Shown piece by piece: positions 7,843-54,727 of a DNA stretch of 64,000 nucleotides. A program made the translations under genes and the position numbers. Position 1 is the first letter of the stretch, and every line of letters starts with the position of its first letter. Below the pieces are notes generated by a model. It was not told the origin of the DNA. It worked only from the letters and a program-made list of their open reading frames with translations, and made no database searches. The stretch lies in the NCBI RefSeq assembly GCF_006345805.1, contig NC_043003.1, positions 78,244,001 through 78,308,000 on the forward strand. Direction: 5' to 3'. Source of the DNA: Octopus sinensis (lineage: Eukaryota).

Positions 7843-7866
7843 TCAATATATAAAAGTAATTCTTAC

Positions 7867-27045: not shown

Positions 27046-27887
27046 GGTTGTTGATTTCCTCTTGGGTGAGGTCAGCAGCCAGCCGGAAAATCTGGGATAG
27101 GCGGTGGCTGATCTTGAATTCCGCATTGAAGCTGAGCACGCTTTTTAGGACTGGAGAGGGCATAAATGTCAAGATGTGTAAAGGGTTGCGGTTTTCGGAT
27201 TGAAAATCTCAGAGTCATATGAAGGAGAGATCTGATTATTCGATGGTCAGCTCATCTTTCAGCACCTCTCGTCTATTTAACATATAAGGGTTAAAAACAA
27301 AAAGGATTAAAATGTGACCTGATAAACTAGAGTCCGTGAGTTCTTTTTGTTTCCTTCCCTATTCTATCACAGGTGCTGTTATGTACTCCAGACGACACAT
27401 AACTACGTTTGTTCAAATATCAGTGTTAGAGTAAACATCGTGCTAGTTCGCATTATGCTGTTGTTTTTGTTCTTATCGTAGCAGAGTGTTTTATTTACTG
27501 GAACTTTGAAATATTTTGTAATAAACATACGTATACTATTGATTTATAAACTGAAACTTGTGTAAATACCAACCAATCAGTTTGATACTAAATAATATTC
27601 GAGAAAAAACTTCATTTATCGTGTTTCTCTGAACCACGTATTGCAAACAGAAAAACCTATTAACAATTGGTAAATATTTACAGTCAATAAAATTTAATCC
27701 CCAGACAAATATTTAGTGAAGTTTGTTTAGGGTTTTATTTTAAAATGCATTTATTGAACTAACAATTTTTATCAATCTTTCCCTATATATATATCCGATC
27801 ATCTAAGTACGACACCATCACTTACTTTCTTCTGTTCAGAGAGAGATTGAATTCCTTTTGCCTTGTCAAAAACTTACCTACTTCAGT

Positions 27888-27927
27888 ATGCTGAAACTAC
27901 TCTTAGTTGTTGCCGTTTTTGTTGCGG
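27888..27927 (+). CDS. Exon 1 (signal peptide MLKLLLVVAVFVA) of an uncharacterised secreted 12-Cys protein
   Basis: ATG at 27888, hydrophobic core, and G|gtaagt phase-1 donor. Upstream ttctgttcag acceptor ends at 27839, implying a 5'UTR exon further upstream. Confidence 0.8.
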
Positions 27928-28132
27928 GTAAGTTCTTTCATTATTTTACTCCTTTAATGATTTCATTCATTGGACTGCGGCCATGCTGGAACCCCACATT
28001 CAAAGTTTTAGATAATCGTATCAACTCCGGTATATATATATATATAATATATATATATATAATATATATATATATATAATATATATATATCAGTCTACTA
28101 CTTAATTTTATCAGCTGCCGATGCTTACATAT

Positions 28133-28357
28133 ATTTCTTTATTGCCGACAAGGGGCTAAACATAGAGGGGACAAACAAGGACAGACAAAGGGATTAAGTC
28201 GATTACATCGACCTCAGTGCGTAACTGGTACTTAATTTATCGACCCCGAAAGGATGAAAGTCGACCTCGACAGAATTTGAACTCAGAACATTAACGGCAG
28301 ACGAGATACGGCTACGCATTTCGCCCGGCGTGCTAACGTTTCTGCCAGCTCGCCGCC
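28133..28357 (-). mobile_element. tRNA-derived SINE (family B)
   Basis: Reverse complement of ggcggcgagctggcagaaacgttagc...gagttcaaattc...gtaccagtta...aataaagaaat. Related copies near 5460-5630, 44626-45022 and 62905-63130. Confidence 0.82.
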
Positions 28358-28881
28358 TAAATAAATATATATGTTACATAGTGCTGGGTGACGGAGTCGT
28401 TCATTAACGCTGCCTTGACCGGTGACACGGTATAGCGCCTGTGACAAGGTGCGAACGGTTCGTTTTGAGAATCGAAATTACGAGCTCACGATCGTGTGTG
28501 CGACACCTTAACCTCTAGGCTACAGGCCTTTACGCGCACACACACATGGTGCAAGTAAGAAGAACGAATATAGCACATCTTTATCATTAGTAACAATTGG
28601 GTCGAAACCTATGGTAATCTCATTAACCCATGAATAAAGAACATTTATCCACCAATGCAGTGTTGAGCACTTATTGTCACTTTTCCATATTAACATGTAT
28701 ATATACATACATATAAAAGCAAATAGTAACAAGGATGTCCGGGCATCAGTACATAACGGCTTTGTTACTTATTTGCTTTTTGTTCACCTAACTTTGAGCT
28801 GTGTGGACTATGCCAATCTGACTTGGTGCCTCAATTTAAGTACCTACTTCAACTGAATCTTAATTGTATTATATATATATA

Positions 28882-28928
<47 letters not shown>

Positions 28929-28947
28929 ATATAATATATATATACAC

Positions 28948-29002
<55 letters not shown>

Positions 29003-29006
29003 TACA

Positions 29007-29512
29007 CTAGCAGTATCGCCCGGCGTTGCTCGGGTTTGTAAGGGAAATAACTATATAAGCATTTTTAGAGAGTTACTTCCCTTATAAATTCGGGCTTTCT
29101 TAGCCATTTTTGTTTTGGTGTCTTCAAGCCATGAAGTCGTTGTTCTAAAAGAACGCTGGTTTCCTTCACAACGCATTACGACGTTGATTTCTTTACACTC
29201 CCTTCCCCACAGCTTCACGAGGGAGGGAAGGGGGAGAAGCAAACAGGTGCAGCTGTGAGCGTGGACGCCAACTCCGCCGCCATCGACATACGATGCATTT
29301 TATGCATTAAAATGGAATAAAAAATGATGTTAAATTATTTTTAAAATCGTAAACTCATCGTTGACGCGCGCTAATAGTCAGACGGGCTCGATATGAATCA
29401 CGACTATAAGATACCCGAATTTGGTTAAACTGCACCGCAAAATGTGGGAGGAGTTAGGAATCTAAATCGAAGGGGACAGACACTCACACAACTAGAGTTT
29501 TATATATATAGA
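29007..29512 (-). mobile_element. Non-autonomous Helitron, same family as 16373-16768 but with a different internal segment
   Basis: On the minus strand it has a TC start, a cccgagcaacgccggg hairpin and a CTAG|T end. Terminal ~200 bp and ~75 bp are shared with the 16.4-kb copy. Confidence 0.87.
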
Positions 29513-29958
29513 TATATATATATATATACATATACATCTATGGTAGGCTTCTTTCAGTTTCTGTCTACCATATCCACTCATAAAGCTTTAATTGGCCTGA
29601 AGATATACTAGAAGACACTTGCTCAAAGTGCCAGACAGTGTGACTGAACCTGAAACCATGTGGTTGGGAAGTAAACTTCTTACCACACAGCCATGCTTGC
29701 ACCTTATATAATATAATATAATATAATATAATATAATATAATGTATAATATAACATAATATATTTCCAAACTTAACTACATATTCATGTGTAGAATTCCG
29801 TATTTACAACGGTGAAACAGAAGAATCAAATAGAGTTTGCAAATGGAATTTTGATATGATTTCTTTTTTGTTGTCTTTATATATTACCTAGCAATTTGAA
29901 TCAAATTCTTCAACCACTTATTGAATTTTTTTTCCTTTGAACACTAATGATTCTGTAG

Positions 29959-30061
29959 GTACCCAAGCATCTGCCAGATGTTCTTTTAGAAAAAAAGGAG
30001 AATGCCTGTCGCAATTTAGACATTTGGCAGAAGCCAAGGACAGTAAAGAGAAGATATGTAG
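29959..30061 (+). CDS. Exon 2 of secreted Cys-rich protein (GTQASARCSFRKKGECLSQFRHLAEAKDSKEKICR)
   Basis: ttctgtag acceptor and AG|gtaagt donor. 103 nt, phase 1->2, open in the frame set by exon 1. Completes the signal peptide with an A-S-A cleavage motif. Confidence 0.82.
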
Positions 30062-30332
30062 GTAAGTATATCTTAAAAGCACTCACAGGTAATATTTATG
30101 TTCCTTTTCTTATACAATTCTTTGAATTCCTTTTATAAAGAAGAGGCTAGAGATTCCAAATTCCATCGATGGGATTCAGACATGAAAAACATGAAAATTA
30201 CTTGTTGGATTTAAGAGAAGTTTTAATATTTCTAGTGTTCTATTTACAGTCTGTATTTACAGAATGCGTGCAATATATATAAGCATATATGAAATATATG
30301 TTTGTATGAAGATATATATATGCATAAAAGAG

Positions 30333-30372
<40 letters not shown>

Positions 30373-30754
30373 TGCATGTATGTTTCTAATGCATTTGAAA
30401 ACTGAGTTGCTGATGTTGACATATGGGGTATTAAAAGATTCAGTAATCTTCTGGCTACCAAATAAACTTTACTTTCATTTACTTTCATGATCTCAACAAC
30501 CAGCTATAGTTATTTGAAATGCACTACTCTACAACGATGACGTTTCATTAGAAAGTGAAAGTAGTTTCACAGTTTCAATTTGAATCAAAACTATATAGGT
30601 GACTACTTCCATTACCTTGATGACCAAGTCAGCAGTGGAGGTGGATGTTCTGAGAGCTTAGCTGCTTGAATAAGAATAGGCTGAGTAAAGTTCAGAGAAC
30701 TTCTACCTTTATTGGTAAAAGAAGAACCTCTTCCTCAGACTGAAAGGCAGATGC

Positions 30755-31010
30755 CTATGTGTGAACAGCCATGCCACATGGCAGTGAAACATGGACTGTA
30801 CCTGCAGAGGACATGTGAAGGCTTGAAAGAAATGAAGCTAATATGCTTTGCAGGATGTGCAACATCAGTGTGCACATATGACAAAGTCTAAGCTTCTTGA
30901 GAGAAAAAGTGGTTATAAGTGGAATTAGATGTGGTGTGCAAGAGAAAAGACTGCCCTGGTGTGGCCATGTGATGCATGTGGATGAGAATAGTTGCATAAA
31001 GAACCTCATG
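30755..31010 (+). mobile_element. Degenerate RTE RT-tail fragment (same family as 10433)
   Basis: catggcagtgaaacatgg...gaggacatg...aatgaagctaatatgct...gatgtgc matches the 10.4-kb and 49.7-kb copies. Confidence 0.7.
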
Positions 31011-31450
31011 ATTGATAAAGCACTGTGAGAGCTGGAAGTGAGCCATGGGTTGGTACAAGTAATAATCTGAGGGAGCTAGGTCCAGACTATTAAGTTCCTG
31101 GAGTTTATTTCAGGTTGTTCAAGTGGTATGAGGTCTTGCATTTTCTTACTACAGAAGAGCTCACTCTCCATTAACCACTGCCTGATATTTTTGTCACACA
31201 ATGGCATACACCCACTCCAGCTGTTTGGAGTATAGATAGGCATCAATGGCTTGCCTGTCCACAATGAAATCATAGTGAATTAATAAGCAACTAATAATCA
31301 AATATGTGATACTGAGCAGCAACTTAAACTTTCATAGGCATCTTAAAGTTTCATAGGCATCTTACAGAAACCTAGCTTATCAGACTCAGTTAATACACAC
31401 ACACACACGTATGTATGTATGTTATATTGTTTTTTTCTGTCTTCTTTAAG

Positions 31451-31542
31451 GGTCTACCGTGATGTTGGAAAGTGCCTTGCCAAGTCTCACTGCCATTTAC
31501 ACCAATTTGGTGGTTTATTCAGGGCCGCACATGAAGCGTGTG
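31451..31542 (+). CDS. Exon 3 of secreted Cys-rich protein (VYRDVGKCLAKSHCHLHQFGGLFRAAHEAC)
   Basis: ttctttaag acceptor and G|gtaagt donor. 92 nt, phase 2->1, 3 Cys. Confidence 0.82.
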
Positions 31543-31989
31543 GTAAGTAAAGAATAAAAGAATTTGGCAGGGTGGCAGTGGGGTCAAATAATGTGTATTC
31601 AAAATTTTTTCCAGATTGAATGTGATTAGCTTTTAGTATATAGAGTATTTATTTTACGGAGATGTACTCGCATAGCAAGTAATTTGATCTGAGATCGTGT
31701 GCTGAAACGAAAACAATTGCAGTGTGGAAGGTGTTTATAAGCCATTTAAGAAACACACAAAAGCCGTTCGATTCACTTCAACATTTAAGTTTAATTTGTC
31801 AAAATATTTTCGTCGCTAAAATCCGCGACCTGTTCACTGACAAAGTCCGTGCTGCATCTCAGCATTTATTTTGCTTGACATTAATAAAAATAAAGTTAAA
31901 TTATGGTGACTGATAGACCCTCGTATGAAGCAAATGTGGTTACTCCTGTGAGTCACTGTCTCCATTCATTTTGCTATGGATGATGAGAC

Positions 31990-32620
31990 TCACCTATGTG
32001 TTCAATTTATATATAACATAATGAAATTATTGTATACAGTGCTCAGGTACACCACAACTTGTCAAAAGTGCATATAAAGCATATGCATTAATGTACAAAT
32101 GTCTGGAAAGTGAACAGTGTATGAGTCAGATACATGCTTGCATGTGTATGGAGAGAAGAAAATCAGGTGTAGTGTTAGCGAATCTCAGGAAGCATGGAAG
32201 TTTTGAAGGATGCAGTGCTCCGACAACTAACAACTGATGCCGGCAGTTTGTTCCATGCTTCAGCAAATCTTAGCGTGAAAAAATGTTTCCAAAAGTCATG
32301 GGAGCTATGTTGTTTTCTGACTTTGTAATCATGTCCACGGGTGTTAGACAGATGGAGTTTGAAAAGGTGCTCAGAGTTATTGTTTGTAAGATGGTTAGTA
32401 ATTTTATGGGTGTCTGCCAAGTCAGCTGCCAGATGCTGGAGTTTCAATGTATCCATGCCCAGGGAAGTAAGGCATTCAGAATATGGCAAATGCCTGACGG
32501 AGGGTATTTCTACAAGTAATAAGGAGCACTGGCCTCTTGCCAGACTTTGGTGCTCGGGGGTGCTTCAGAATATTCTGGGTGGGGAATGATTTGTATTGCA
32601 GGAAGATTTTTGTAAACTGA
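31990..32620 (-). mobile_element. CR1/L2-type LINE 3' fragment
   Basis: YSECLTSLGMDTL...DL..THKI...TRGHDYKV...FFTLRF.EAWNKLPASVV...SFK is the characteristic CR1-group post-RT tail. Confidence 0.82.
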
Positions 32621-33523
32621 ATTTTCTAACACTGAGGGTGCAACATTTAATAGTAAGAAGCTAGTGCCATCCAGTGTACCCCCTTAGCAATGGACATGAA
32701 AAAGCAGGCTTTTGTTTAAAAGTGGAGTTTAAAGTATTATACTACTTTTTTTTATGAAGCTGAGAGCCTTTTGAAAGCACTCATTATTTCATGCCAAATC
32801 TTTATTTTAAGTGAGACATTATGATCTTTTTAGGGATGCTGAAATAAATTTTTCAAAAGGGCAATTGACTTTTCCAAGTCAATGAATAATCTCACTAACA
32901 TTTTTAGCATCTGAGGTCATCATAGAGCACGTATAGCAAAACAGCAAAACGAAGTGATGGCCTTATTTGGACTACCATTGGTGTTTATGCTAGTGTTTAA
33001 TTGCAGTGTATTTGGCTTTTGCTGAGGAAAATTTCAGTCTTTGATACTTATAAGACCCAAAACCTTGCATGACCTACAAAATATATTTATAAAACCTGGT
33101 GTCTCTCCCAAAGAATGATAAACTAATGTGCAATTCATTTGTAGAAAGTAGCTAACAAATCAATTCCAGCCATGTTTTACTTTTTATTTTGAACATGTTA
33201 TGCATTGAACAGATTTCTGTTAGAATTAAAGTGGACATTTACACCCCATGACATGATCATCATAATATATACTTTGGCATAAGAAAGAAGAGGGCAAATA
33301 AAAGATCAGAACATTATGAGTGTGTGTGTGTGTGTGTGTGTACATGCGTAATGTGTGTTTTGTGAATATATAATGTTCTGATCAGTTCTTGGCAAGCTTC
33401 TTTCTCATGCTTAAGTACACATATATGAATACTGTATTGTGGAATGTAAATGGCTAAAATATCCAATTAAATTGAATTACTTTTAGTGAGAATTTTAAAC
33501 ATATTTTAATACTTCATCTAAAC

Positions 33524-33783
33524 CAGTGTTTCTCAATTATTTTTTACCTATGGAGCCCCTTGATTCCTATTTTACTTGGATGGACCCTCCTAAGCATTCA
33601 ATGTTTTAAAGAATCCTGCAATATTTTCATAATTAAATATCATTTAGAATTGTATTAAAAAAATTTGTTAAAATATTTTGTGTACTGTAGAAGAATAACC
33701 AGTTTATTGCATGTAAATTTTAGCTACAAAATCTTATGTGGACCCCCTCAAAGGGTCATATGGACACCAGTTGAGAACTACTG
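33524..33783. mobile_element. hAT-type MITE
   Basis: TIRs cagtgtttctcaa and ttgagaactactg, with a perfect 8-bp TSD atctaaac on both sides. Confidence 0.9.
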
Positions 33784-33970
33784 ATCTAAACAAAAGATCT
33801 AAATGTAAGAAAAAGGAAAAAAAAACAAAGTCAAGCAAAAACAAAGCAAAACAAAAAAAAAACAATAATTTTTCATTAAAGGGACTTTTTGAGAGTGACT
33901 AAAGAATATCATATTATAAAATACTATGTTTATGTTTAATATGAGATGTTAATTTTATTTTATTTTCCAG

Positions 33971-34055
33971 AGGGTAAATGTGAACTCACTAAGGTGGTAG
34001 CATGCAAACTTCAAGAACACAATAAGATGATAATGAACAATGGTACTTACTGCTC
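33971..34055 (+). CDS. Exon 4a of secreted Cys-rich protein (EGKCELTKVVACKLQEHNKMIMNNGTYCS)
   Basis: tattttccag acceptor and TC|gtaagt donor. 85 nt, phase 1->2, 3 Cys spaced like exon 2. Confidence 0.75.
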
Positions 34056-34137
34056 GTAAGTTTATTAAAAATTTCTCAGTTTGATGAAGCCTGTCATCTG
34101 CCTCTTATATAAGCTTTTATTCACCAAAGCCTTACAA

Positions 34138-34345
34138 TCATCATCATCATCATCATCATCATCATTGTTTAATGTTCGTTTTCCAGGCTAGCATGGGTTG
34201 GATGGTTTGACTGGGGTCTGGGAAGCCAGGAGGCTGCACCAGGCTCCAGTCTGATCTGGTGGTGTTTCTACAGCTGGATGCCCTTCCTAATGCCAATCAC
34301 TCCATGTGTGTAGTGGGTGCTTTTTACGTGCCACTAGCACAGGGC
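34138..34345 (-). mobile_element. 3'-end-only copy of the RTE family at 10433; similar copies near 50984-51380, 55964-56222, 57915-58330 and 63290-63455
   Basis: (cat)n tail followed by ttttccaggctagcatgggttgga...ctacagctggatgcccttcctaa. Confidence 0.82.
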
Positions 34346-34644
34346 CCACAACTACCTGCTAATTATTAACCTATGTTTCCTTTATCCTCCTCCTTTCCAC
34401 ATCCTTTATCTCTCACTCAGACTCCTTGTCTCTTCTACTGCCATGGTGATAAACCAGTAAGGGAGCTTTTGTGTGGCCTTTTGACCTTCAAGTAATAGAA
34501 GCTAAATATCCTTAAAAATCACACTCTACTGCTTTTATAAAAGGCAGTGGGACATTGGATAATGTGATTCTAGATATATCCTTTTTGAGAAAATGCTGGA
34601 ATAATCATTAATAAAACATCTTTGAATGCTGGGTACTTGATTAA

Positions 34645-34863
34645 CCCTTTAGTGTTCAGATTATTCAATCAAACATAATGCCTATTGATTCCCATTGATT
34701 TGAATTAATCATGCATTATCTCATATCTTCAAGATCTTGATGATGTAATTACTTAATGTAGAATAACATTGTAGGGTAGGTGTGAGAGCCTGGATCTGGT
34801 CAGTTTGAACATAAAACAGATGAGCTATTTTGGCCGGATATGGCCAGTTTAAATACTAAAGGG
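34645..34863. mobile_element. piggyBac-type MITE
   Basis: TTAA|ccctttagt...actaaaggg|TTAA. A second copy lies at 51542-51762. Confidence 0.85.
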
Positions 34864-35404
34864 TTAAGGTTGTCTATACAAGCAGGCAGATCATATATTG
34901 ATCTGAACATGTTTTAACATAGCTTCCTAAAACTAATATACATGTATACTTGTGGTAGTAACACTCTGATAACAGGATTATTAAATAAATTGAAATTTCA
35001 GCTCAGCAGACTAAAAAGGGGTTTGCCATCACAATATGGCTGAAGGGAAAATGCTACATAACACATTGTACTATTTCAATCTGAAACACCAGCAATCTTT
35101 TAATCTTTTTCTTGAAACCATCACATTTCATGTATCCTTCCATTTTAGAGCAGTAGATGATGATTTGATAGAGATCTTGCTGGTATTGAAGTTCTTTCAG
35201 AGGACCAGTTAAATAAAAGTCTCTATGAATAGAGCAGAAACTGAGTGTTATAATTATGGGGTAACAGGGTCTGAAAAATAGATGGGAGGGTCATGGTTGT
35301 AATGTATCATACTTTGTCTTACATGAATAGACACTCCTAAAATAATAAGTTTCCTCTACTCCTTTGTAACATACAATGTTACTAAAAATTTATTAACTGT
35401 TCTG

Positions 35405-36180
35405 TGTGAGGTGGTTTCACAAAGTTCCCAGACTAGTTATGTTTAATAAAAAATAACCTATCTGCCTAAGTTCTAACATCAGCACCTTGTGCAACAATAT
35501 ACATGTCCCAGCATCCCTGCCACTTTCAAATCCAGCTTAGAAGTAATTTTCTGTAAGTAAGTCGAGGACCTTCTGTGATTCACTCTGGATCTTGACAACG
35601 GTGTTAAAACGGTGACCTTTGAGCTGTATTTTCATCATGAGGAAGAGATGAAAATCCGCAGGTGCTAAATTTGGTGAATATGGCAGGTGCGGAAGTGATA
35701 CCATGTTGTTTGTGGCAAGAAACACACATGTAAGAAGAGCTCGGTGACAGGGTGCATTGTTGTGATGAAGAATCCAATTCTTCATGCTCCACAGATCTGG
35801 TCGCTTTCACCAAATGTCTGCCCTCAAATGCTTCAAAACGTTACACTAGAATACTTGATTGATGGTCTGGCCCCGGGAAAAGAATTCTCAATGCACTTGA
35901 TTGAGTTGCAATTCTGTCATGGCTTCGAAAGCCACGACAGAACCACTGTCATGGCTTTTTTACCACTGGAAATATTATGTACGACCCATTGCCTCATCAC
36001 TGTAAACTTGCTGAGGCTTGCTCAATATTTCAGTAGCAGACTTCCCAAGTTCAATGCAAAATTTCACTTTGGCTTTTTGTTCCAGCCTCCTGTCCATGAT
36101 AAAATCACAGACTACAGCATACACATGATCACAAAAACTAAAATTTCACAATTTGCAAAGTAAACATAGCAATGTCACTC
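35405..36180 (-). mobile_element. Mariner transposase fragment (3' half)
   Basis: WILHHNNAPCH...PHLPYSPNLAPADFHLF...LKGHRF catalytic motifs, frameshifted. Confidence 0.85.
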
Positions 36181-37179
36181 CCTACACTGCCTCATGAAAG
36201 TCACTGTTTGCTCTCACCATGCACGCAACTGTATGCAGCCATCTGTTGGCCTCAGACTTTGGTCACTCACAAATACACACCAACCTTGGCTCCATAGATG
36301 TGCTGTTTCCTCTCTTATATTTTTTTACCATGACCAAGTGGCTTCCGCTCCTCAAGAGTACTTGATCTCTCACTATTTCCACTTAGGCCTGCCAAACTTT
36401 CTAGTATCATCCTCATTTGTCAGTTATATTCTGCTCACCCTCACTTCATTTGAAGCCCTACATTAACCTCTGCTTTCAGTCTATCCCCTCCATAAAGTCA
36501 GCCCTTTGAAATCCCCCATTTATATCTTTTGTACAGTTGCCGTCTTACAAGTTTTTCAGGAGGAACATCTAATTGGCACTCCATCAGTTACAACAATAAG
36601 AGTACCTGTTGATTGGATCAATTGAATAGCCTGCTAGTGAAATTCATGTGCAAGTGGCTGAGTACTCCACAGACACGTGTACCCTTAATGTAGTTCTCAG
36701 GGAGATTCAGCATGACACACAGCGTGACAAGGCTGGTCCTTTGAAATACAGGCTCTACACATTTTTGCCAGCTGAGTGGATTGGAGCAATGTGAAATAGA
36801 ATGTCTTGTTCAAGGACACAATGTTTCACTGGGAATTGAACTCACAACCTTACAGTTGTGATCCAAATACCCTAACCACTAAGCCACGTGCCTTCACTAT
36901 GAAGGTCCACAAATGACTTGGATCTAGCCCTTAACTCTGGACCAAACTGTTAACAAAATATATACAAAATACATGCCGTATTCTCTGGCATACAAGTTGA
37001 CATAGTATATAGTGTAAACAATAATACATCATCACTATCTTTTAAATTCCTGTTCTATTTCACATGAAATTTTTGGTGCTCCAAAGTTGTCTTGGAATAT
37101 ACACTGACTTACTTTTTTGGTTTTTAATTTTGATCTGAAATATTCAACTTGTATGTTACAAAATATGGTATATATACTC

Positions 37180-37390
37180 TTTACTCTCTTACTTGTTTCA
37201 GTCATTTGACTGTAGCAATACTGGAGCACCACCTTTAGTTGAGCAAATCGACCCCAGGACTTATTCTTTGTAAGCCTAGTACTTATTCTATTGGTCTCTT
37301 TTGCCAAACCGCTAAGTTACGGGGGCATAAACACACCACCATCGGTTGTCAAGCGATGTTAGGGGGACAAACACAGACACACAAACATAT

Positions 37391-37449
<59 letters not shown>

Positions 37450-37998
37450 CATACATATATATGATGGGCTTCTTTCAGTTTCCATCTACCAAATGCACTC
37501 ACAAGGCTTTGGTTGGCCTAAGGCTATAGTAGAAGACACTTGGCCAAGGTGCCACGCAGTGGGACTGAATCCGATAATATATATCTTATATTTTTCACTT
37601 GTTTCAGTCATTAGACCAGCCATGCAGGGGCACAGCCTTGAAGAACTTTTAGTTGAATGAATCAACCCCAGTAATTGTATTTTTAAGCCTGGTACTTATT
37701 CTATCAGTCTTTTCTTGCTGAACTGCTAAGTTACAGGGACATATACACACCAACACTGGTTGTCAAGCAGTAGTGGGGGACAAACAGAGACTCAAACATA
37801 CACACACACACACACACAGATATATACATATATACGACAGGCTTCTTTCAGCTTCTGTCTACCAAATCCACTTTCAAGGCTTTGGTTAACCTGGGGCTAT
37901 AGTAGAAGGTACTTGCCCAGTGTGCCATGCAGTGGATCTGAACCTCGGACCATGTGGTTGGGAAGCAAACTTCTTACCACACGGCCATACCTGCACCT
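37180..37998 (-). mobile_element. Two tandem family A SINE copies
   Basis: Two successive reverse-complement family A bodies (~37180-37570 and ~37590-37998). Confidence 0.82.
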
Positions 37999-39302
37999 AT
38001 AGAAATTTATAACTATTTTGTTCTTTTCTCCAGATACCATCCCGCATATCTGAAATGTTATGATAACACTGACTGCGAAGACTTGATGAACGCTGAGGAT
38101 AAAATGATGCAGAGTTACTGTGGTAAATATTAGTATTCTTTATTTTTTTATTGGTTTCAGTTGTTGGGCTGAGGTATTGCTTTAAGTTGTGTTTCTTTGT
38201 TTGTCCATGGACAAGATACCTCAAGAATCGCTGGATGAATTCAGATGAAACTTTCAGGATGATTGGCCTCATAACTGGCACAAACTGATTAGATTCGGGG
38301 ATCGATCTGATACCAGACAAGGATTTTGGATAATTTGTTACATTTACTTTACTTTACATGACTACGATCTTATGTTCACTTTCAAGTCTTCCTCAATTAT
38401 CTCCCTTTAGGTTGTTTCCAAAGTTTTATTTTCATTCCTCTATCATTAATTTTACTTGTGTCTCTATCTTAGTAAAAACTAATGGATAAAGAAATCAAAC
38501 TACATAAACAAACAGCAGCAAAAACCGTTCAAAAACTAAATAACACTAACATATTTTTATAACATATATATTATATATTATACATACACATTAACACTCT
38601 ACAGTATAATTACATATATACATATATCTATACATCAATCTAAAACAACAGGAATACTAAAGGAAGGCTGGAATTTAAGAGAAGAGAAAACCAAAATGTC
38701 TCTTGCTATTCATTTAAAGATTCCTGAGTAGAACTTATTACTATTACCTCCACCTTTGAAACTATTTTGAATAGTGAATTTGTTAACCTTGGCTTGTATT
38801 AGATAACGGTAAACTATTTATTACAGTTGCTAAATTTTCTACAACCACCTTCACATTCTATGACTACCATTGGGATCAATCAGGTACCGGACAAGGATTC
38901 TGGATTACTTATGCGTATTTTTTTTTACTTTTTTGAGAGTTCCTGTTTAGTATTCTCATTTGTGAGAGCAGTTGAGTTTATTTCAGATTTTCTCATTTTA
39001 AAAATAATCTATGGCTAATCACTGAGGGGATGTTGGTGTTGTCTTGGCAGGGTCTGTACTCTCTGAGTGGTCTTGTTTCAATTGATATATATTCTTTGAA
39101 TGATTAAATTTATTCTTTTTGTTGGAAGGGGAACTACCCAATGCATTGTTTTACACCAGTATACACACAGACACACAAAACCACATACAATTCCACTCAT
39201 GCACACACATTGGTATATACATACATATGTATGTATGTATGTACATATACATGCATACACATATATTATATGCATGCATACAGACATGCTCACACACACG
39301 CA

Positions 39303-39356
<54 letters not shown>

Positions 39357-39688
39357 TAAATGTGTATATCTATCTGCCTATCTATCTATCTATCTATCTA
39401 TCTCTTTATATATGTATGTATATATAATCACACATGCCAATCTTCTCTTGAGGAGGGTTTGCCTTGCTTTGACTAAAAATTCATTGGAACTTCTGTTATT
39501 CTACATACCTATGACATCATTCCCATCTATTATGTATGTATATGTATGACGTGTGTGCATGTGTTCGCATGTGTAAGTGTGTGTGTGTGTGTGGTTGTAT
39601 GTATTTTGACTTCTTACTTTTCTCTTTAATGTCTACTTAAATTTGTTTTGTTTTACCTTTTAACTTTTGGCCTGTTTGGAAACACCAG

Positions 39689-39773
39689 GAAGTTGCATCC
39701 ATAAAGAATTTACATGCTTGAGAATTCTTAAAGATATCAAGAAAGTTGAACACAGCAAAGAGAAAATATGCGA
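39689..39773 (+). CDS. Exon 4b of secreted Cys-rich protein (GSCIHKEFTCLRILKDIKKVEHSKEKICE)
   Basis: Long polypyrimidine tract plus accag acceptor, and GA|gtaaga donor. 85 nt, phase 1->2, 3 Cys. Shares SKEKIC with exon 2. Confidence 0.78.
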
Positions 39774-40184
39774 GTAAGATTTTTAAAACCTATTGTTGTT
39801 GTTGTTGTTTTCTCATTGAGAAAACTTATATTAGAATGGTGATGGGTTAACAGAATAAGTGGAACACTGAACAAAATAGTATTCATGATTGTACTTTTAA
39901 AGGCATTAGTGATGCTAGTAGCAGAGATATAGTTATAAATAGCTACAGGAAATGGGTTATGGATTAGGATTGCTGGGAGCTTATCTCAGTGGTTGCTACT
40001 ATTATTGTTATAATAATGAATAATGAACTTATTGTAAATGGTGCTCAGGTACACTACAATGTCTTGTTATATTTAGTTTCATCCCTTTGCATTCTGAGTT
40101 AAAATCCTAGGTCAGTCAACTTAAGTCTTTCATCCCAGCAAGGCCAATAAAATAAAATAATGAGCAACTATTAGTATTATATTT

Positions 40185-40495
40185 GTGGAGGTGCAATGGC
40201 CCCATGATTAGGGCAGTGGACTCACGGTTGGAGGATCGCGGTTTCGATTCCCAGACCGGGTGTTGTGTGTTGAGCGGAAACACCTAAAAGCTCCACAAGG
40301 CTCCAGTAGAGGGTGGTGGCGACCCCTGTTGTACTCTTTTGCCACAACTTTCTCTCATTCTCTCTTACTGTTTTTTTGAGTAATGCTGCGATGGACTGGT
40401 GTCCCGTCCAGCTGGGGGGAACACATATGCCACAGAAACTGGGAAAAACGGGCCCATGAGCCTGGCTAGGCTTGAAAAGGGAGGCAAAAAAAAAA
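40185..40495 (+). mobile_element. tRNA-derived SINE (family C) with A-rich tail
   Basis: Head ggaggtgcaatggccc...ggtttcgattccc with A/B boxes. Body includes gcgatggactggtgtcccgtccag. Ends in (A)10. Confidence 0.8.
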
Positions 40496-43400
40496 CTATG
40501 ATATTTTATCTACACAAAATCTAGGACCTGTTGCTTATGGCAAAAACCAGTATATTACAATATATTCATTACATGCAGCTATGAACTATATATGTTGCCC
40601 TTTGGTATCCATTGAAGGTGAGGTTGATTGATAAAATATAAACCAACGCCTTTATTTGTCCTTTGGAAATCCAAGTTAGTTGATGGAAATAGTAATAACC
40701 TTTCTTTATAGGATATTTGGGATATGAAGTGTGAGGCCTTGGTGTATATTTATTGAATCTAAAGGAGTTGTGAGGTGTATTGTGATGGGGCAACCAAACA
40801 CTTTTGATTGGACTGTTGATAGCAAAATATCTCGGTTACAAACCAAACACAATATTAGTGATGCAATAGGATCTACTGTCTTTTCAGTCAGTTGTGTTGA
40901 TCCCTGTCTACCACTTGGCCATGTTCACTCTCATATTAGTTATATTTCTTTCAATGTATAACTGAGATGGTCAATCACTCTCAATTGCAATGTCTACTTC
41001 TGAGATATTGTCGTCTGTGATGAAATATGTCTGCAAAGATGAAATGCTCATAGCTGGAAAATTTTTTTATCAAAGATCTTCTCAATCACGACTGACCTAG
41101 GATTAAACAACAAAAACAGCAACAACCACATTCTCCATCTAACTTTTATATATATATATATATAATTTTAAAAAAAGAGAAAGAAGAAAGAAAAGACTTT
41201 TGTCAAAAAATCTTTATCTCCTGTTTTATGTGCTGAAATAATATATTTCATCTTATCTTATTTATATCTTTTATTTCATCTTATCTTATTTATATTTCCT
41301 TTATTTTAGTGTATTTGCAAAGACAAAATCCTGCTTGGATGATACTCAATGTCATTTCCATAAATATAAGCATTTGGTAAAAGCTATTACAGCATCATGT
41401 GGTAAGTTGTCTTCTAAATTAGTTGTGTGTCATCTTTACACCATTAATCTGTCATGCTTATTTCTCTTCTTATCATCACATGTACTGTGTCTAACCCACC
41501 TACATCCCTGCATCACACTACGCATTATCCCTAGTCCTTCGCCCAACAAAACAGCTCTCTGAAATTCCTTTCCTGTCATAATTTTCTGCAGATGATCCAC
41601 CTTATTATCTCTGAGTGGAGCCTGTAATGATCACACACACTACTCTTCCCTTTTTATTAACTTCATATAAAGAAAAAATGTGGTGGGGCAATCATTTTTG
41701 GAATAATTAAATATCTGTGAACCATTAAAGGGAAAGAAAAGGGAGCTACCAACTGAGAGGTACATGCTGTAGTGTGTCAAACCGAGCATAAAAATAAATC
41801 TATCTAAATGCAGCTTAAATGACTCACAAGGAAATTGAGGTAATACCAGTTACATTGTTTGAAATTCTTGAGTAAGTTTGCTAAGCTATTACACCTGTCA
41901 CTCATTTGGGTTCCTCCTATACAATCCCAGAATGCATATATGATGCTATTCCAGTTATCTCAAAAATATATAAAGGGAATGTTCCTATGAATAGTGCCAA
42001 GTGCCTTACAACAGCTCATTGTTCAACTGTAGGTAAATAAATACCTGCCTCAAGGTATTGTTTTCACTGTTATTCACTTTTTTATCCACTGACCGACCTT
42101 ATGTGTGATGACCATCCACAAAAAACAATGAAGGAGGGACAGTACGAAAGTGAAACCTAAAGCATTTGTGGGATTTTGCATCAAGTATAGAAAACCAACA
42201 TAAAACATAAAAGAAATTAATGTGATATATAAATATAAATAAATACATCCCAAATTTAAAGGAAAGCATCACTTCAGGATTTCAATGAAAATCTAGTGAA
42301 CCCTGGGTTACTGTTATTAGTAAGGTATGTATGTATGTCCTTGTCCCAGTTACTGTCTCTTTTGTTTGCAGAGTAGGCCTATTCTACAGAGCCAAACAAT
42401 CCAGCTTTCACTTTATAATATTAAATTATTTCATTAAAGAAAAAAAAAGTCGATAATCTGTTGTCTGAGGAGAGTCATTTTCTTTTCGTGCCTAATGATT
42501 TAGGAAAATAAAAATAAGAATTAAGTGGAAATATTTAGGAAAATGAAAAAAGAATTAAGTGGAAATTTTACCAGTGTGTTAAATCATAAGGCACAAAAAG
42601 AAAATGACTCCCCAGACACAGCAGAATATGCTTCAACACATGAACTCATATAAAGAATTTTGCAAACCAAATCCAAAAACGAAATAAAAGTTGATAAATT
42701 TTCTGTTTTCATTCTAACTTGCAGAAGGCTCCTGTGACTTACCTGCTCTAGTGAAATGTAAGAATAAGAAGTATAAAGAACTGCACATAACAAAGAAGAA
42801 TGTCTGTCAGTAAGTCTTGTCGCAAAATCTGTTTCACTCCAATCATCTTTGTTAATAATTAGGTCAGACTTGTTGTATGCAGTTGTTGTCTTCTTTATGA
42901 TAGGATTACTCATATATAGTAACAGTGAGTCAAAAATCTTCCATTGACTGTAATTATCCAAGTAATTAGGGGACAAAACACCCTCTTTGGAGTGTTTAAA
43001 AGCTAAAAAAAAATGAACAAGGGAGATAATTCCCATTAGCTCAGTTACAGTATTTACTAAGCTGAATCTGTATTATTTTTTTTTTGTTTTTTAAACAAGT
43101 GTGATGATAATGATAATGATGTTTCTGTCTTATTAGATGCTAGCAAAGTATATTCGATTTAGTTTGCAAGACTAACCCTTTGTTCCCATAAGAAAGCCTA
43201 TCTTATGGAAGATAGACTCTGCTTCACTGTTGAAGACCAAAATATGTCCAGAGTTCTCAGTATTGTCAAACCCATGACTTAGTGTTTTATTTTTTATTTA
43301 AATATGAGTGTTGTCTCCCTTGCATTTTATTTACCCAAATTATCGTTACGATAAGGATTTTTGCCCCCTTAATGCATGTGTAATTTTAACTGCTGAATAT

Positions 43401-43594
43401 TTTTCAGCTTCGTCATTAAGTATATTAACACAGACTTTACTGTAGTATGGAGGTAGCAAGTTGAACATTCTGTGATGAGGTCCACAGGTCTTACATATCA
43501 TATATATCCAAACCTTTGTCTATTTGTCAAAATCATTTAGTTGACGGAACAATCCTAGTAGATAAACTGTTGTCATATTGCATTTGTTTCTGTA

Positions 43595-43993
43595 GGCGCA
43601 GGAGTGGCTGTGTGGTAAGAAGCTTGTTTACCAACCACATGGTTCCGGGTTCAGTCCCACTGCGTGGCACCTTGGGCAAGTGTCTTCTACTATAGCCTCG
43701 GGCCCACCAAAGCCTTGTGAGTGGATTTGGTAGACGGAAACTGAAAGAAGCCCGTCATATATATGTATGTATGTGTGCATGTATGTTTGTGTGTCTGTGT
43801 TTGTCCCATCCAACATCGCTTGACAACCGATGCTGGTGTGCTTACGTCCCCGTCATTAGCAGTTTGGCAAAAAGAGACCGATAGAATAAATACTGGGCTT
43901 ACAAAGAATAAGTCCCGGGGTCGAGTTGCTCAATTAAAGGCGGTGCTCCAGCATGGCCGCAGTCAAATGACTGAAACAAGTAAAAGAGTAAAA
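43595..43993 (+). mobile_element. Family A SINE, full length; further copies at 50122-50503 (-) and 60309-60716 (+)
   Basis: ggcgcaggagtggctgtgtggtaag (box A), ggttcagtccc (box B), conserved body, and gtaaaaga tail. Confidence 0.88.
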
Positions 43994-44073
43994 GTGTAAA
44001 GTGAACAAAGATTATTTCATATTTATAATCAAATTTTAATTTATAATCTTTTTATATCCTTTTTTTCTTTCAG

Positions 44074-44162
44074 AGAGTACCCTAAATTTAAAGAGTGCTT
44101 CGTAAATGCAGGTTGTGATGAACTGTTAGCAGCTAATAAAAAGTTTATGGCTCACTTCTGTC
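44074..44162 (+). CDS. Exon 5 of secreted Cys-rich protein (EYPKFKECFVNAGCDELLAANKKFMAHFC)
   Basis: ttttctttcag acceptor and C|gtaagt donor. 89 nt, phase 2->1. Its Y-x5-C-x5-C...C pattern parallels exon 3. Confidence 0.82.
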
Positions 44163-44625
44163 GTAAGTATATGTATCAACAATCTGAAGTGTAATGTCTA
44201 CAGTTAATAATTCTTTATTGTGAACGACAGAAATTTATTGCTCTCACTTTTTGTATTTGTGTATATATTTATATTTCTTCTTTCTTTGATTATTACTTAC
44301 ATAGAAATAGTATCATGCATGATCCTTGATACACATAGGACTTGTAATAAGGGTAGGGGGTGGTAATTAACAGATGTATAATTTGTACCAGGGGCGGGTT
44401 ATAATCAATGCGGCAGGTGTATGATTTGTAATTAAAATTGGTCACAACTCACAGTGGGTGTATGACTTGTGGTGGGGGTGTGCCATGACCGACACATGGT
44501 TGGTGCATAATTTGTATTGAGGGTGGGTCATATTTGGCACATGGTGGTTTATGAATTGTAACTGACATGTGGAAGGTACATGAAATGTATAGGGGTGGGT
44601 CTTGAAAGACACATAGTGGGTACAT

Positions 44626-45022
44626 ATAAGGTGGTGAGCTGGCAGAAATGTTAGCACGCCGGGTGAAATGCTTAGCCGCATTTCGTCTGCCATTACGTTT
44701 TGAGTTCAAATTCTGATGAGGTCGACTTTGTCTTTCATCCTTTCAGGGTTGATAAATTAAGTACCAGTTACACACTGGGGTCGATATAATCGACTTAATC
44801 AGTTTGTCTCCTCTGTGTTTAGCCTCTTGTGGGTAGTAAAGAAATAGGTATTTCGTCTGCCATTATGTTCTGAGTTCAAATTCCACAGAGGTCGACTTTG
44901 TCTTTCATCCCTTTGGGGTCAATAAATTAAGTACCAGTTACACACTGGAGTCAATGTAATTGACTTAATCCGTGTGTCTGTCCCCTCTATGTTTAGCCCC
45001 TTGTGGGCAATAAAGAAATAAA
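44626..45022 (+). mobile_element. Family B SINE with internal partial tandem duplication
   Basis: Flanked by a 17-bp TSD acacatagtgggtacat (44609-44625 and 45023-45039). The body repeats from ~44846. Confidence 0.87.
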
Positions 45023-45627
45023 ACACATAGTGGGTACATGGATATTTCTCCTCCCACCATCTGTCATTTACATAGTTTTGTTGTTTTATTAATATCTGCA
45101 TGTTAATAACACATTCTAGTTCATCTGTCCCTCTTCCTTCCTTCCCCTATATCTGCTTCTTTTCTTTGTACTCATCTAATATATTATGTATCTATCACAT
45201 TGCTTGACTTTTCAGCAACCAAAGGTATTAATTGAGTGACCAACGCTACTGATATCTTGTTTGGGGCGGAGGAAGGGAACAGTAGTTTGTTATCAGTGTC
45301 AGAACTTGACTGGTATTTTATCGCTCCTTTGGGGTGAAAGACAGAATCGATTCCCTTCACCCATCTCTCCCTCCTTTTATGCCTATCACCTATTGACACA
45401 TTAATTTCATATCTGCCAGATATTTAGTCACATTTAGTTTCTCCAGGTAGGGGTTTTCAATTAAGTCATTTTTGGGTGCACTTTTGTTTATTTTCCCATT
45501 TTTTGTGCCTGGAGACATGTAAAAATTTTCCTAGCAATCTGGAATAATCCACATGGACATACCAAAGTAACAACTCATTCTGAATATATATATTTTTAAT
45601 ATTTTTTTTTAAACTTTTTCTTTGCAG

Positions 45628-45647
45628 ATAAACAGAATAGGTCTTAA
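45628..45647 (+). CDS. Terminal exon of secreted Cys-rich protein (HKQNRS*)
   Basis: tttttctttgcag acceptor, phase 1, TAA at 45645-45647, and AATAAA 53 nt later. Confidence 0.65.
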
Positions 45648-45699: not shown

Positions 45700-45705
45700 A
45701 ATAAA
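45700..45705 (+). promoter_or_regulatory. Candidate polyadenylation signal of the Cys-rich gene
   Basis: AATAAA downstream of the stop, followed by T/GT-rich sequence. Confidence 0.45.
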
Positions 45706-48786: not shown

Positions 48787-50105
48787 GATCATCATCATCA
48801 TCGTTTAACATCCACTTTCCATGCTAGCATGGGTGGACGGTTCAACTGGGGTCTGGGGAGCCCGAAGGCTGCACCAGGCCAGTCAGATCTGGCAGTGTTT
48901 CTACAGCTGGATGCCCTTCCTAACGCCAACCACTCTGAGAGTGTAGTGGGTGGTTTTATGTGCCACCGACACAGGTGCCAGACGAGGCTGGCAAACGGCC
49001 ACGCTCGGATGGCGTTTTTTATGTGCCACCGACACAGGTGCCAGACGAGGCTGGCAGACGGCCACACTCAGATGGTGTTTTTGTGTGCCACCGACACAGG
49101 GGCCAGACGAGGCTGGCGAACAGCCACGATCGGATGGTGTTTGTTACGTGCCCACAGCACGGAGGCCAGTCGATGCGGTACTGGCTACGGCCATGTTCGG
49201 ATGGTTTTCTTATGTGCCACCGGCACTGGTACCACAAAAATACAAATTCCATTGATTTTCATCTATTTTGATTTGGTTTTGGTTTTCACTTGCCTCAACA
49301 GGTCTTCACAAGTGTCACAAGAAGGAAGGTATGCACAGGTGGACTGACTACGTCCCAGGTAGGGGCCACGGGTTATGGCCTTACTAGTCTTGCCGGGTCT
49401 TCTCACACACAGCATACTTTCATAGGTCTCGGTCTCTAGTCATTTCCTTGGTGAGACCTAATGTTCGAAGGTCGTGCCTCACCACCTCGACCCAGGTTTT
49501 CCTGGGTCTACCTCTTCCACAGGTTCCCTCAACTGCTAGGGTGTAGCACTTTTGCACACAACTATCTCCAGCCATTCTCATCACATGACCATACCAGCGC
49601 AGCCGTATCTCTTGCACACCACAACTGATGCTTCTTAGGTTCAACTTTTCTCTCAAGGTACTTACACTCTGTCGATTATGAAAACTGACATTACACATCC
49701 ATCGGAGCATACTGGCTTCATTTCTTGTGAGCTTACGCATATCCTCAGCAGTCACGGCCCATGTTTCACTACCATGTAGCATGGCTGTATGTACACATGC
49801 ATCATACAGTCTGCCTTTTACTCTGAGCGAGAGGCCTTTTGTCACCAGCAGGGGTAAGAGCTCTCTAAACTTTGCCCAGGCTATTCTTACTCTAGCAGTT
49901 ACACTTTCAGCACACCCACCCCCGCCACTGACTTGGTCACCTAGGTAGTGGAAGCTATCAACTACTTCTAGTTTTTCTCCCTGGAACATGGAAGACGTTG
50001 GTCTCTGCACATTTTCAGTGTTTATTGCTCCTGAGCATCTGCCACAGACAAAAACTATTTTCCTAGTTAGCCTTCCTTTGACATTGCTACACCTCTTATG
50101 ATGAT
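48787..50105 (-). mobile_element. 5'-truncated RTE LINE (same family as 10433) with ~63-bp tandem units in the 3'UTR
   Basis: LEVVDSFHYLGDQVSGGGGC...RVRIAWAKFRELLP...LYDACVHTAMLHGSETW...RLRWYGHV...GRGRPRKTW, and a (cat)n tail at 48787. Confidence 0.9.
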
Positions 50106-53904: not shown

Positions 53905-54723
53905 CGCATGTCTCGAGCAGATCATCAGAGGCATCGACTTGCAAGGCGGTGCCAACATCAATGGTGAGCTCCTCACCCACCTCCATTTCGCTGACGACAC
54001 CGTAATCATCGCTGAAACCATGGATCAGCTTCAGACCATGCTGACGGAGCTCGACATCAAAAGCTCTGCAGTAGGTCTCAAGATGAACCGCATGAAAACG
54101 AAGTTCATTCGGTCAGACAACGTACCAACAGGTCGAATGATGATTGGCAGTGATGAAATAGAGGAGGTAAAGGAATATGTCTACCTGGGACAGGAAGTGA
54201 AAATGTGCCGAGATATCGAAAAGGAGATCTCATGGAGAGTAAGGGCCGGATGGAAGGCATTTAATGGCATAAGGGAGGTGCTCAAGGGAAGGTTGGACAG
54301 GACCACCTGCGCCAACCTCATCAACAGTACAGTTCTACCTGCAATGTTATATGGTAGTGAAACATGGGCTACAACAAAGAGAGAAGAGCAGAGACTGGTA
54401 ACGGCTCAAAGAGCCATGGAAAGGTCAATGCTTGGTATCTCGTTGAGAGAGCACATCAGTAGTAAGATCATCAGAAAGAAGTCCGGCGTGAGGGATGTCA
54501 TCGCAGAGTATACACGCAGCAAGTTTAGATGGGCTGAACATGTCGCCCGGCTCACCGATAATCGGTGGACCCGCGCGAGCGGAAACGACCACCCGGAAGG
54601 CCTCCATGACGGTGGAGTTACGATTGGGATCAGATGGATGAGAAAGGCACAATCCGGAGAGGAGTGGACAGCATGCTGTGAACAGCGGTGTGAAATGAAC
54701 GCCCAACGGACTGGTCGGTCAAG

Positions 54724-54727
<4 letters not shown>
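53905..54727 (+). mobile_element. RTE-clade LINE fragment (RT domain end) in a USP39 intron, antisense to the gene
   Basis: INGELLTHLHFADD (RT catalytic motif), GLKMN..KTK, EYVYLGQ, LYGSETW and KFRW.EHVAR..DNRW. (TA)n on both sides. Confidence 0.92.

Follow-up and report, generated by a model that had tools for sequence, protein, structure and literature searches.

The window analysed here, a stretch of 64,000 nucleotides of the Octopus sinensis genome, carries ten short exons between positions 27888 and 45647 (Table 1). The predicted splice, GT-AG throughout, keeps a continuous frame when all exons are used and gives a precursor of 259 aa: a signal peptide followed by four six-cysteine modules, M1 to M4, grouped into two di-modules (M1M2 and M3M4) of 12 cysteines each. 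Over their 780 nt the ten exons contain neither stops nor frameshifts, and 24 of the 24 cysteines and 18 of the 18 splice sites are intact. When the window was scanned with a strict combination of half-module and splice-site patterns, 8 matches were obtained, all on the + strand and in perfect a-b-a-b order; the same scan applied to block-shuffled windows (n = 200) gave a mean of 0.07 matches and a maximum of 2. A second signal exon was sought between M2b and M3a and only microsatellite-encoded artefacts were found, and no AATAAA was detected in this interval. Together with the AATAAA that follows the TAA and with the conserved promoter, this indicates one gene and not two. The segment thus probably corresponds to a single ten-exon gene, orthologous to LOC106868059 of Octopus bimaculoides, with the 259-aa precursor as the product of all its exons.

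Table 1. Features of the gene in the window, with the corresponding segments of the O. bimaculoides locus sequence (L001).
Feature	Position	Strand	Phase	Content	Remarks
TATA-like element	27784..27795	+		about 95 nt 5' of the ATG	promoter/5' region 93% identical to O. bimaculoides
Exon 1, coding part	27888..27927	+	0 to 1	ATG and signal-peptide n-/h-regions, MLKLLLVVAVFVA(G); donor G/GTAAGT	
Exon 2, M1a	29959..30061	+	1 to 2	signal-peptide end TQASA/R and Cys1-3 of M1	L001 15024-15122 orthologous
Exon 3, M1b	31451..31542	+	2 to 1	Cys4-6 of M1	L001 16921-17010 orthologous
M2a	33971..34055	+	1 to 2	Cys1-3 of M2; conserved N-G-T/S sequon	L001 18879-18965, 76% aa identity
M2b	38034..38122	+	2 to 1	Cys4-6 of M2	L001 21612-21698 orthologous
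M3a	39689..39773	+	1 to 2	Cys1-3 of M3	85 nt; exon "4a or 4b" of the original prediction
M3b	41310..41401	+	2 to 1	Cys4-6 of M3; CHFHKY motif resembling CHLHQF in M1b	
M4a	42725..42809	+	1 to 2	Cys1-3 of M4	85 nt; the other "4a or 4b" exon
M4b	44074..44162	+	2 to 1	Cys4-6 of M4	exon 5 of the original prediction
Terminal coding exon	45628..45647	+	1 to stop	(H)KQNRS and TAA	
Polyadenylation signal	45700..45705	+		AATAAA	53 nt past the stop codon

The original prediction had read from this segment an unannotated secreted protein of 142 aa with two six-cysteine modules, spliced from six exons. These six exons, their canonical GT-AG sites, their phases and the 142-aa splice are present exactly on the + strand, and the first module has the announced pattern C-x7-C-x17-C-x8-C-x5-C-x15-C and is basic (pI 9.4) with 5 His. 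It had also been said that the exons escape the ORF track, and they are indeed too short to give ORFs of at least 60 aa. The two-module architecture itself is incomplete, as four more homologous, in-phase exons lie between its exons 3 and 5: M2a, M2b, M3b and whichever of M3a and M4a was left unused. The prediction consequently passes over M2 and M3, and its second module is either M4 by itself or a hybrid of M3a and M4b. That module had been credited with the C-x8-C-x5-C core; the core is there, but the description understates the case, all six cysteines being found in every module.

The signal peptide, as read from the sequence, is 19 aa long (MLKLLLVVAVFVAGTQASA/R): its n-region contains K, its core is hydrophobic, and positions -3/-1 carry A-x-A. 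Cleavage is predicted after A-S-A and would leave four modules of about 59 aa; the precursor would be secreted, with N-glycosylation at the conserved NG[TS] sequon. Each module is interrupted by a phase-2 intron just past its third cysteine and bounded on both sides by phase-1 introns. Odd modules have a cysteine spacing of 7/17/8/5/15, which in M3 is 6/17/8/5/15; the spacing of even modules is 7/15/8/5/14. A di-module holds 12 cysteines in about 118 aa. M1M2 and M3M4 align without gaps over 112 aa at 31% identity (E=5e-24); odd and even modules are related through the cysteine framework and exon structure only (hhalign E=0.012). The working unit is the 12-cysteine di-module made of one odd and one even module, single in O. 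bimaculoides and tandem-duplicated here as M1M2 and M3M4. The internal duplication proposed earlier is supported in that phase 1-1 two-exon modules are duplicated; the unit whose duplication the sequence supports is the di-module rather than the single module.

Structure predictions agree with this organisation. The AF2 model of the di-module has six helices (pLDDT 89.6, pTM 0.81, from an alignment of 2-3 sequences), and that of the four-module protein has 12 helices, three per module, with weak overall scores (pLDDT 68, pTM 0.40, again with 2-3 sequences aligned). In the M3M4 sequence used for the profile, the residue D, whose codon spans a splice junction, was replaced by E, the read-through residue, and the final H, also a junction residue, was left off; the AF2 input carries the same substitution. 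Each module is predicted to consist of three helices and each di-module to form a compact six-helix unit, presumably stapled by six disulfides. The earlier claim of a secreted, Cys-rich, helical protein encoded by a multi-exon gene is supported. Foldseek gave no match with E<1 in the PDB (best E=1.6, TM<=0.37) or in BFVD, and the sequence search of the PDB returned zinc-finger noise only and no relevant match.

Among 5.8 billion proteins searched by word index, the 142-aa query matched a single one, XP_014768658.1 (P0001; uncharacterized protein LOC106868059 of O. bimaculoides; E=2.5e-32). An HMM profile built from both di-modules and P0001 recovered the latter as the only true match among 1.84 billion representatives (E=3e-57). 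Two further profile matches (P0002 and P0003) were discarded as spurious repeat proteins that lack the cysteine framework and whose scores sum over 5-7 repeats. Judged from these matches, and within the databases searched, the family occurs in Octopus only. The term "unannotated" applies to O. sinensis in those databases and fails for O. bimaculoides, where the orthologue is annotated. Among the O. vulgaris proteins of the database searched, the gene seems not to be represented. A literature search for LOC106868059 / XP_014768658 returned no paper, and a 2026 preprint on cephalopod venom deals with cephalotoxins and not with this family.

The O. bimaculoides locus aligns collinearly with the window, introns included, at about 87-93% nucleotide identity. 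At the protein level the M1M2 di-module is 66% identical to its O. bimaculoides counterpart and all 12 cysteines align without gaps. The two genes share the signal peptide, the M1 and M2 exons, the phases, the 12-cysteine framework, the NG[ST] sequon and the syntenic position; full-length similarity, exon structure and synteny, and the signal peptide with its 12-cysteine framework each place the window gene in the LOC106868059-like di-module family. LOC106868059 differs in encoding 143 aa with a single di-module and in ending with another terminal exon, of 3 codons. The window gene adds M3M4, an old second di-module, and ends in a tail exon of its own. Instead of M3M4, the O. bimaculoides locus contains a paralogue, a partial duplicate of M1b-M2b in inverted orientation. 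M3 and M4 were not found within 10 kb downstream in O. bimaculoides, and in the window the search for a terminal exon of the O. bimaculoides type yielded repeats only.

Comparison of the two loci revealed an unequal rate of change. Mature exons differ from those of O. bimaculoides at 17.3% of positions, compared with 8.6% in the flanks of +-200 nt (Fisher p=4.8e-6), flank identity being measured only where blastn aligns, which biases introns toward seeming conserved. The signal exon, in contrast, differs by 7.5% compared with 7.0% in its own flanks. Nonsynonymous sites alone exceed the flanks (dN 0.186 versus K_intron 0.091, p=1.3e-4), and the O. bimaculoides paralogues exhibit the same pattern, with 11.9% in exons and 6.5% in flanks (p=0.008). 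Exons carry 0 indels in 409 nt with respect to the orthologue, introns 0.85 per 100 nt. The divergence of mature-peptide exons is about double that of the introns between them, while the signal exon, the promoter, the frame and every cysteine are conserved. The Nei-Gojobori omega of 0.80 (bootstrap 95% range 0.4-1.75; one species pair, 357 nt) could reflect relaxed constraint instead of positive selection. As dS is also raised, part of the excess could come from a mutation rate that is locally higher in exons or from gene conversion among paralogues that is limited to exons.

Divergence of exons beyond that of introns, with a conserved signal and cysteine scaffold, is a feature that the gene shares with the accelerated-evolution class of secreted proteins, which is an evolutionary class and not one of homology. 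Accelerated exon evolution has been described in genes for venoms and for gamete recognition. Nakashima et al. are said to have found in 1993-95 that the mature exons of crotaline snake venom PLA2 genes outpace their introns; accelerated mature-peptide exons reportedly characterise the conotoxin genes studied by Olivera and colleagues, and accelerated mature exons the abalone sperm lysin/sp18 genes that Metz et al. reportedly described in 1998. The window gene resembles these in its fast mature exons, in the conservation of signal, introns and cysteine scaffold, and in lineage-specific duplications. None of them is related to it in sequence or fold, the likeness being one of evolutionary mode only.

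Exon usage other than the complete ten-exon splice was weighed against these data. The 142-aa form, made of the signal, M1, M3a or M4a joined to M4b, and the tail, is decidedly unlikely to be the real or main product. All the junctions that it requires are canonical and in phase, module skipping would preserve the frame because all modules are phase 1-1, and the version with M1 and M4 uses a native module. It nevertheless has to leave out four exons whose donors (GTAAGT/GTAAAT) are strong and whose pyrimidine tracts are good, the annotated O. bimaculoides model joins M1b to M2a and M2b, which are absent from the 142-aa form, and the version with M3a and M4b combines a first half of odd type (x17 loop) and a second half of even type. 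A main product limited to signal, M1, M2 and tail, with M3 and M4 as skipped, alternative or decaying cassettes, is also regarded as unlikely. Such a product would match the O. bimaculoides protein in having exactly one di-module, M2b (phase 1) joins the tail exon in frame, and the acceptor of M3a has the weakest pyrimidine tract among the ten exons. However, M3 and M4 retain open frames, all 12 cysteines, canonical sites and the helix pattern of the family and, as these are kept despite 31% identity to M1M2, they point to long-term purifying constraint on the scaffold; in addition, neither a polyadenylation signal nor a terminal exon of the O. bimaculoides type was found past M2b. That the locus is an unexpressed dead or dying copy seems highly improbable: a dN/dS near 1 and the absence of the window's protein from all protein databases searched would fit, but the ten exons, all cysteines and the splice sites are intact, no exon indels separate the gene from its orthologue, and both promoter and signal exon show conservation. 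The neighbouring ETS gene likewise lacks an exact database match, so that the O. sinensis genome is simply not represented there. The ten-exon gene encoding the 259-aa precursor is consequently retained as the preferred model.

The position of the di-module among known families was weighed in the same way. The original prediction had recognised no named family, and none reached threshold in Pfam, PDB, Foldseek or profile searches; its loose comparison with DUF19-like domains agrees with the sole Pfam signal, a sub-threshold match to CPG4 (PF15481), against which four versions of the query scored 19.4, 16.1, 14.7 and 15.1 bits, the gathering cut-off being 32.7. CPG4 was the top Pfam match for three of the query versions (E 0.0015-0.046) and was matched by none of ten shuffles (5 Cys-fixed and 5 full); with scores under the cut-off, this makes it a lead and not membership. 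According to the Pfam description, DUF19 has 12 cysteines in about 130 aa. Both families resemble the Octopus di-module in being secreted, helical-looking and Cys-rich, the number of cysteines per about 120-130 aa being similar in DUF19, and small mollusc DUF19 proteins exist, such as the 19-kDa K1PB63 of C. gigas (PMC10058639). It nonetheless seems rather unlikely that the gene is a very divergent member of CPG4/DUF19 (12-Cys; nematodes, insects, molluscs) with a structural or matrix role outside any arms race. The scores lie 13-18 bits under the gathering cut-off, the shuffle control comprised ten shuffles only, P0001 has no Pfam match, and DUF19 (PF01579) was not matched by the queries at E<=10, the agreement being in cysteine count per unit alone. 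Moreover, no CPG4/DUF19 member was among the profile matches in the 1.84 billion representatives, and a matrix protein would rarely show accelerated evolution. Insect OBPs, Aplysia attractin, saposin-like proteins and GFR-alpha/GAS1 are likewise secreted and all-helical, with three disulfides per unit of about 60 aa; they differ from the Octopus modules in cysteine spacing, and the insect OBP, attractin, saposin and GDNF-GAS1 Pfam families gave no match at E<=10, nor was there a solved-structure match.

From the evolutionary pattern, we infer that the disulfides may provide a rigid scaffold on which variable helix surfaces would bind a fast-evolving external partner; candidate settings include saliva or venom, gamete or egg recognition, and immunity. 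By analogy with genes that evolve in this mode, the product is most likely secreted and takes part, as a binding protein, in an interaction that evolves fast. Toxin, antimicrobial, carrier and signalling roles had been put forward by the original prediction as possibilities; the accelerated-evolution signature favours an inter-organism or gamete-interaction role over that of a housekeeping carrier. More tentatively, the genes of the two species may represent an undescribed Octopus-restricted family with its own fold of tandem three-helix, three-disulfide modules and accelerated, scaffold-conserving evolution, possibly acting as a saliva/venom or fertilisation/egg-recognition factor, with a module number that changes between species by cassette duplication or loss.

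Cephalopod genomes contain many lineage-restricted genes without an assigned role, and the LOC106868059-like gene offers a clean, testable example: a compact secreted scaffold with a confident AF2 di-module model and without a Pfam, PDB or cross-phylum relative. The excess of exon over intron divergence, seen here in two independent comparisons, is a pattern that has repeatedly pointed to toxins, immune effectors and gamete-recognition proteins. Were it expressed in the reproductive tract or in the posterior salivary gland, this would be a new family for octopus venom or fertilisation biology and, in that case, also a natural example of module-number evolution via phase 1-1 cassettes. For annotation, the locus illustrates how easily this gene is truncated or mis-joined.

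The original prediction described a secreted protein of 142 aa with two six-cysteine modules, encoded by six exons. All six were present on the forward strand with GT-AG boundaries and the predicted phases, and their splicing reproduced the 142-aa sequence exactly. The model was nevertheless incomplete, as its third and fifth exons enclose four further in-phase exons of the same family and strand (M2a, M2b, M3b and M4a) that it omitted, and its interpretation is supported only in part. The added exons were located by tBLASTn with the sole database homologue and by a scan for the Cys pattern. Splicing of the ten exons gave a single open frame of 780 nt, encoding a signal peptide and four six-Cys modules (M1 to M4; 259 aa), each split between an exon with Cys1-3 (a) and an exon with Cys4-6 (b). 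None of the exons is long enough to enter a 60-aa ORF list. The alternative fourth exons of the original prediction, of 85 nt each, are evidently M3a and M4a, and its second module is therefore a hybrid of M3a and M4b, or M4, with M2 and M3 skipped.

Exons of the Cys-rich gene and repeated elements of the window
Feature	Position	Strand	Remarks
Exon 1	27888-27927	+	ATG, phase 0 to 1, GT-AG
M1a	29959-30061	+	phase 1 to 2, GT-AG
M1b	31451-31542	+	phase 2 to 1, GT-AG
M2a	33971-34055	+	absent from original prediction; matching phase
M2b	38034-38122	+	absent from original prediction; matching phase
M3a	39689-39773	+	85 nt, phase 1 to 2, GT-AG
M3b	41310-41401	+	absent from original prediction; matching phase
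M4a	42725-42809	+	85 nt; matching phase
M4b	44074-44162	+	phase 2 to 1, GT-AG
Tail exon (terminal coding exon)	45628-45647	+	phase 1 to TAA, GT-AG
RT/LINE-like ORF fragment	53939-54727	+	RVT_1 match
RT/LINE-like ORF fragment	49420-50169	-	RLRWYGHV...GRGRPRKTW motif, shared with 10223-10798 (+)
RT/LINE-like ORF fragment	10223-10798	+	RLRWYGHV...GRGRPRKTW motif, shared with 49420-50169 (-)
Tandem array	10882-11641		192 bp x 4
Tandem array	48954-49234		63 bp x 4.4
Tandem array	44680-45020		170 bp x 2, within final intron of the Cys-rich gene

A strict scan, requiring the half-module Cys pattern in an open frame flanked by an AG acceptor and, at the right phase offset, a GT donor, recovered the eight module exons of the window in perfect a-b-a-b-a-b-a-b order, together with one microsatellite artefact on the opposite strand; 200 block-shuffled windows gave a mean of 0.07 matches (maximum 2). 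The acceptor of M3a is the weakest among the ten exons. An AATAAA lies 53 nt past the stop codon, and a TATA-like element about 95 nt upstream of the ATG falls within sequence that shares 93% identity with O. bimaculoides. Combined, these results indicate a real and intact ten-exon gene with four modules.

The Cys spacings are 7/17/8/5/15 (M1), 7/15/8/5/14 (M2), 6/17/8/5/15 (M3) and 7/15/8/5/14 (M4), with linkers of 3, 2 and 3 residues. M1 is similar to M3 and M2 to M4, and the lengths of the a/b exons recur accordingly (103/92, 85/89, 85/92 and 85/89 nt from M1 to M4), so that duplication has acted on a 12-Cys di-module of ~118 aa as its unit. M1M2 and M3M4 align without gaps over 112 residues (31% identity, E=5e-24). 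The Cys framework, a phase-2 intron one residue past Cys3 and phase 1-1 boundaries are common to odd and even modules, whose profiles are weakly similar (hhalign E=0.012). The older odd/even duplication is supported by gene structure rather than by sequence.

No plausible exon with an ATG followed by a hydrophobic stretch and a phase-1 end occurs between M2b and M3a, nor does an AATAAA, and M3a does not carry the signal-peptide tail present in M1a. A single transcription unit for all ten exons is the simplest reading of the sequence. Modules are symmetric cassettes with phase 1 at either end, so that a two-module form joining M2b to the tail exon and an M1+M4 form are frame-compatible and constitute candidate isoforms.

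Word-indexed searches of 5.8 billion proteins and searches of 1.84 billion cluster representatives with an HMM profile of both di-modules returned the same and only true relative, XP_014768658.1 of Octopus bimaculoides (uncharacterized protein LOC106868059; 143 aa), consisting of the signal, M1, M2 and ALG. The family is thus Octopus-restricted in the databases searched, and the four-module architecture is new relative to this deposited orthologue. The searches gave no O. vulgaris match, which suggests that the annotation of that species overlooks or lacks the gene.

Collinearity between the window and the O. bimaculoides locus (L001, CM046607.1) extends through promoter and introns (~87-93% nucleotide identity), and the two match exon for exon. 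M3 and M4 were not found within 10 kb downstream in the O. bimaculoides locus, and nothing in the window corresponds to its short terminal exon. The comparison suggests that the O. bimaculoides lineage lost the second di-module and recruited a new terminal exon, or the reverse. For window 38123-45627 (~7 kb, with M3a-M4b and the tail exon; compared with L001 22392-24060), the O. bimaculoides locus offers no unique equivalent, and the gene there ends in a 3-codon exon between repeat copies. An extra upstream in-frame ATG (MYFSM...) of O. bimaculoides is ACC in the window (27876-27890 versus L001 10001-10015), and translation must therefore start at the conserved second Met, at 27888. A partial paralogue in inverted orientation (M1b', M2a', M2b'), part of a second 143-aa gene, is also present in O. 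bimaculoides but not in the window within 27 kb upstream. It lies at L001 6108-8562 (-), head-to-head with LOC106868059; the gene call spans 6099-34060 (-) and its first exons lie past the forward-strand gene, which is therefore nested inside.

Divergence between the two species was measured for exons and introns from shared alignment blocks. Differences affect 64/369 positions (17.3%) of the four mature-peptide exons and 109/1271 (8.6%) of their ±200-nt intron flanks (Fisher p=4.8e-6), while the signal exon (7.5%) is on a par with its flanks (7.0%). The excess over the flanks holds for nonsynonymous sites taken by themselves (dN 0.186 versus K 0.091, p=1.3e-4); synonymous sites show a rise too (dS 0.23, p=0.007), and the two O. 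bimaculoides paralogues follow the same trend (11.9% versus 6.5%, p=0.008). Mature exons therefore diverge at an accelerated rate; this signature of exons faster than introns is new and is the most informative result. Exons contain no indels, whereas introns average 0.85 gap openings for every 100 nt, and 12/12 Cys and every splice site are retained. Exons are slightly richer in GC (38.5% versus 32.5%) and CpG (1.25 versus 0.88 per 100 nt), a difference too slight to cause a two-fold gap. With a dN/dS of 0.80 taken by itself (range 0.4-1.75), the data stop short of proving classical positive selection.

AF2 modelling of M1M2 with a three-row alignment (mean pLDDT 89.6, pTM 0.81) gave six helices, three per module; the four-module protein (two-row alignment; pLDDT 68, pTM 0.40) showed the three-helix pattern in 4/4 modules. 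The predicted di-module would thus be a secreted six-helix unit stapled by disulfides. Foldseek gave no match in PDB or BFVD at E<1 or TM>0.39, and a PDB sequence search returned noise only; the confidently predicted fold, unmatched in PDB/BFVD, is a further new element.

The combination seen here, of exons outpacing introns, a conserved signal and scaffold, and lineage-specific duplication, has been described for crotaline PLA2 genes, conotoxins and abalone lysin/sp18. The protein would be a rigid scaffold that exposes variable surfaces of its helices to a partner that itself evolves quickly, with saliva or venom, recognition of gametes or eggs, and immunity as unranked candidate settings. 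A matrix-type role, as a remote relative of CPG4/DUF19, is a lesser alternative. CPG4 (PF15481) was the only Pfam family reported, at 14.7-19.4 bits for a cut-off of 32.7, and it was matched by none of ten shuffled versions of the mature protein, five with the Cys held in place and five fully randomised; this signal is more than composition or spacing, yet far from membership. The O. bimaculoides protein had no Pfam match, and DUF19, OBP, saposin, attractin and GDNF/GAS1 families were not matched in the Pfam search. The family is uncharacterised, lineage-restricted, Cys-rich and predicted to be secreted.

Window 3147-3560 (-) and 7769-8623 (-) are exons of an SPDEF-like ETS transcription factor gene that includes a SAM/Pointed domain exon (Pfam SAM_PNT, E=1.7e-8). 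ORF 7769-8623, its first coding exon, shares 178/187 aa (95%) with O. vulgaris CAI9725940 and has no exact match in the database. The window therefore derives from an Octopus species near O. vulgaris whose sequence coincides with neither that of O. vulgaris nor that of O. bimaculoides. Because this neighbour also has none, the description of the Cys-rich gene as unannotated says little about the window genome, and its orthologue XP_014768658.1 was already in RefSeq. The array at 44680-45020 is akin to the repeats flanking the O. bimaculoides terminal exon (L001 23664-23899).
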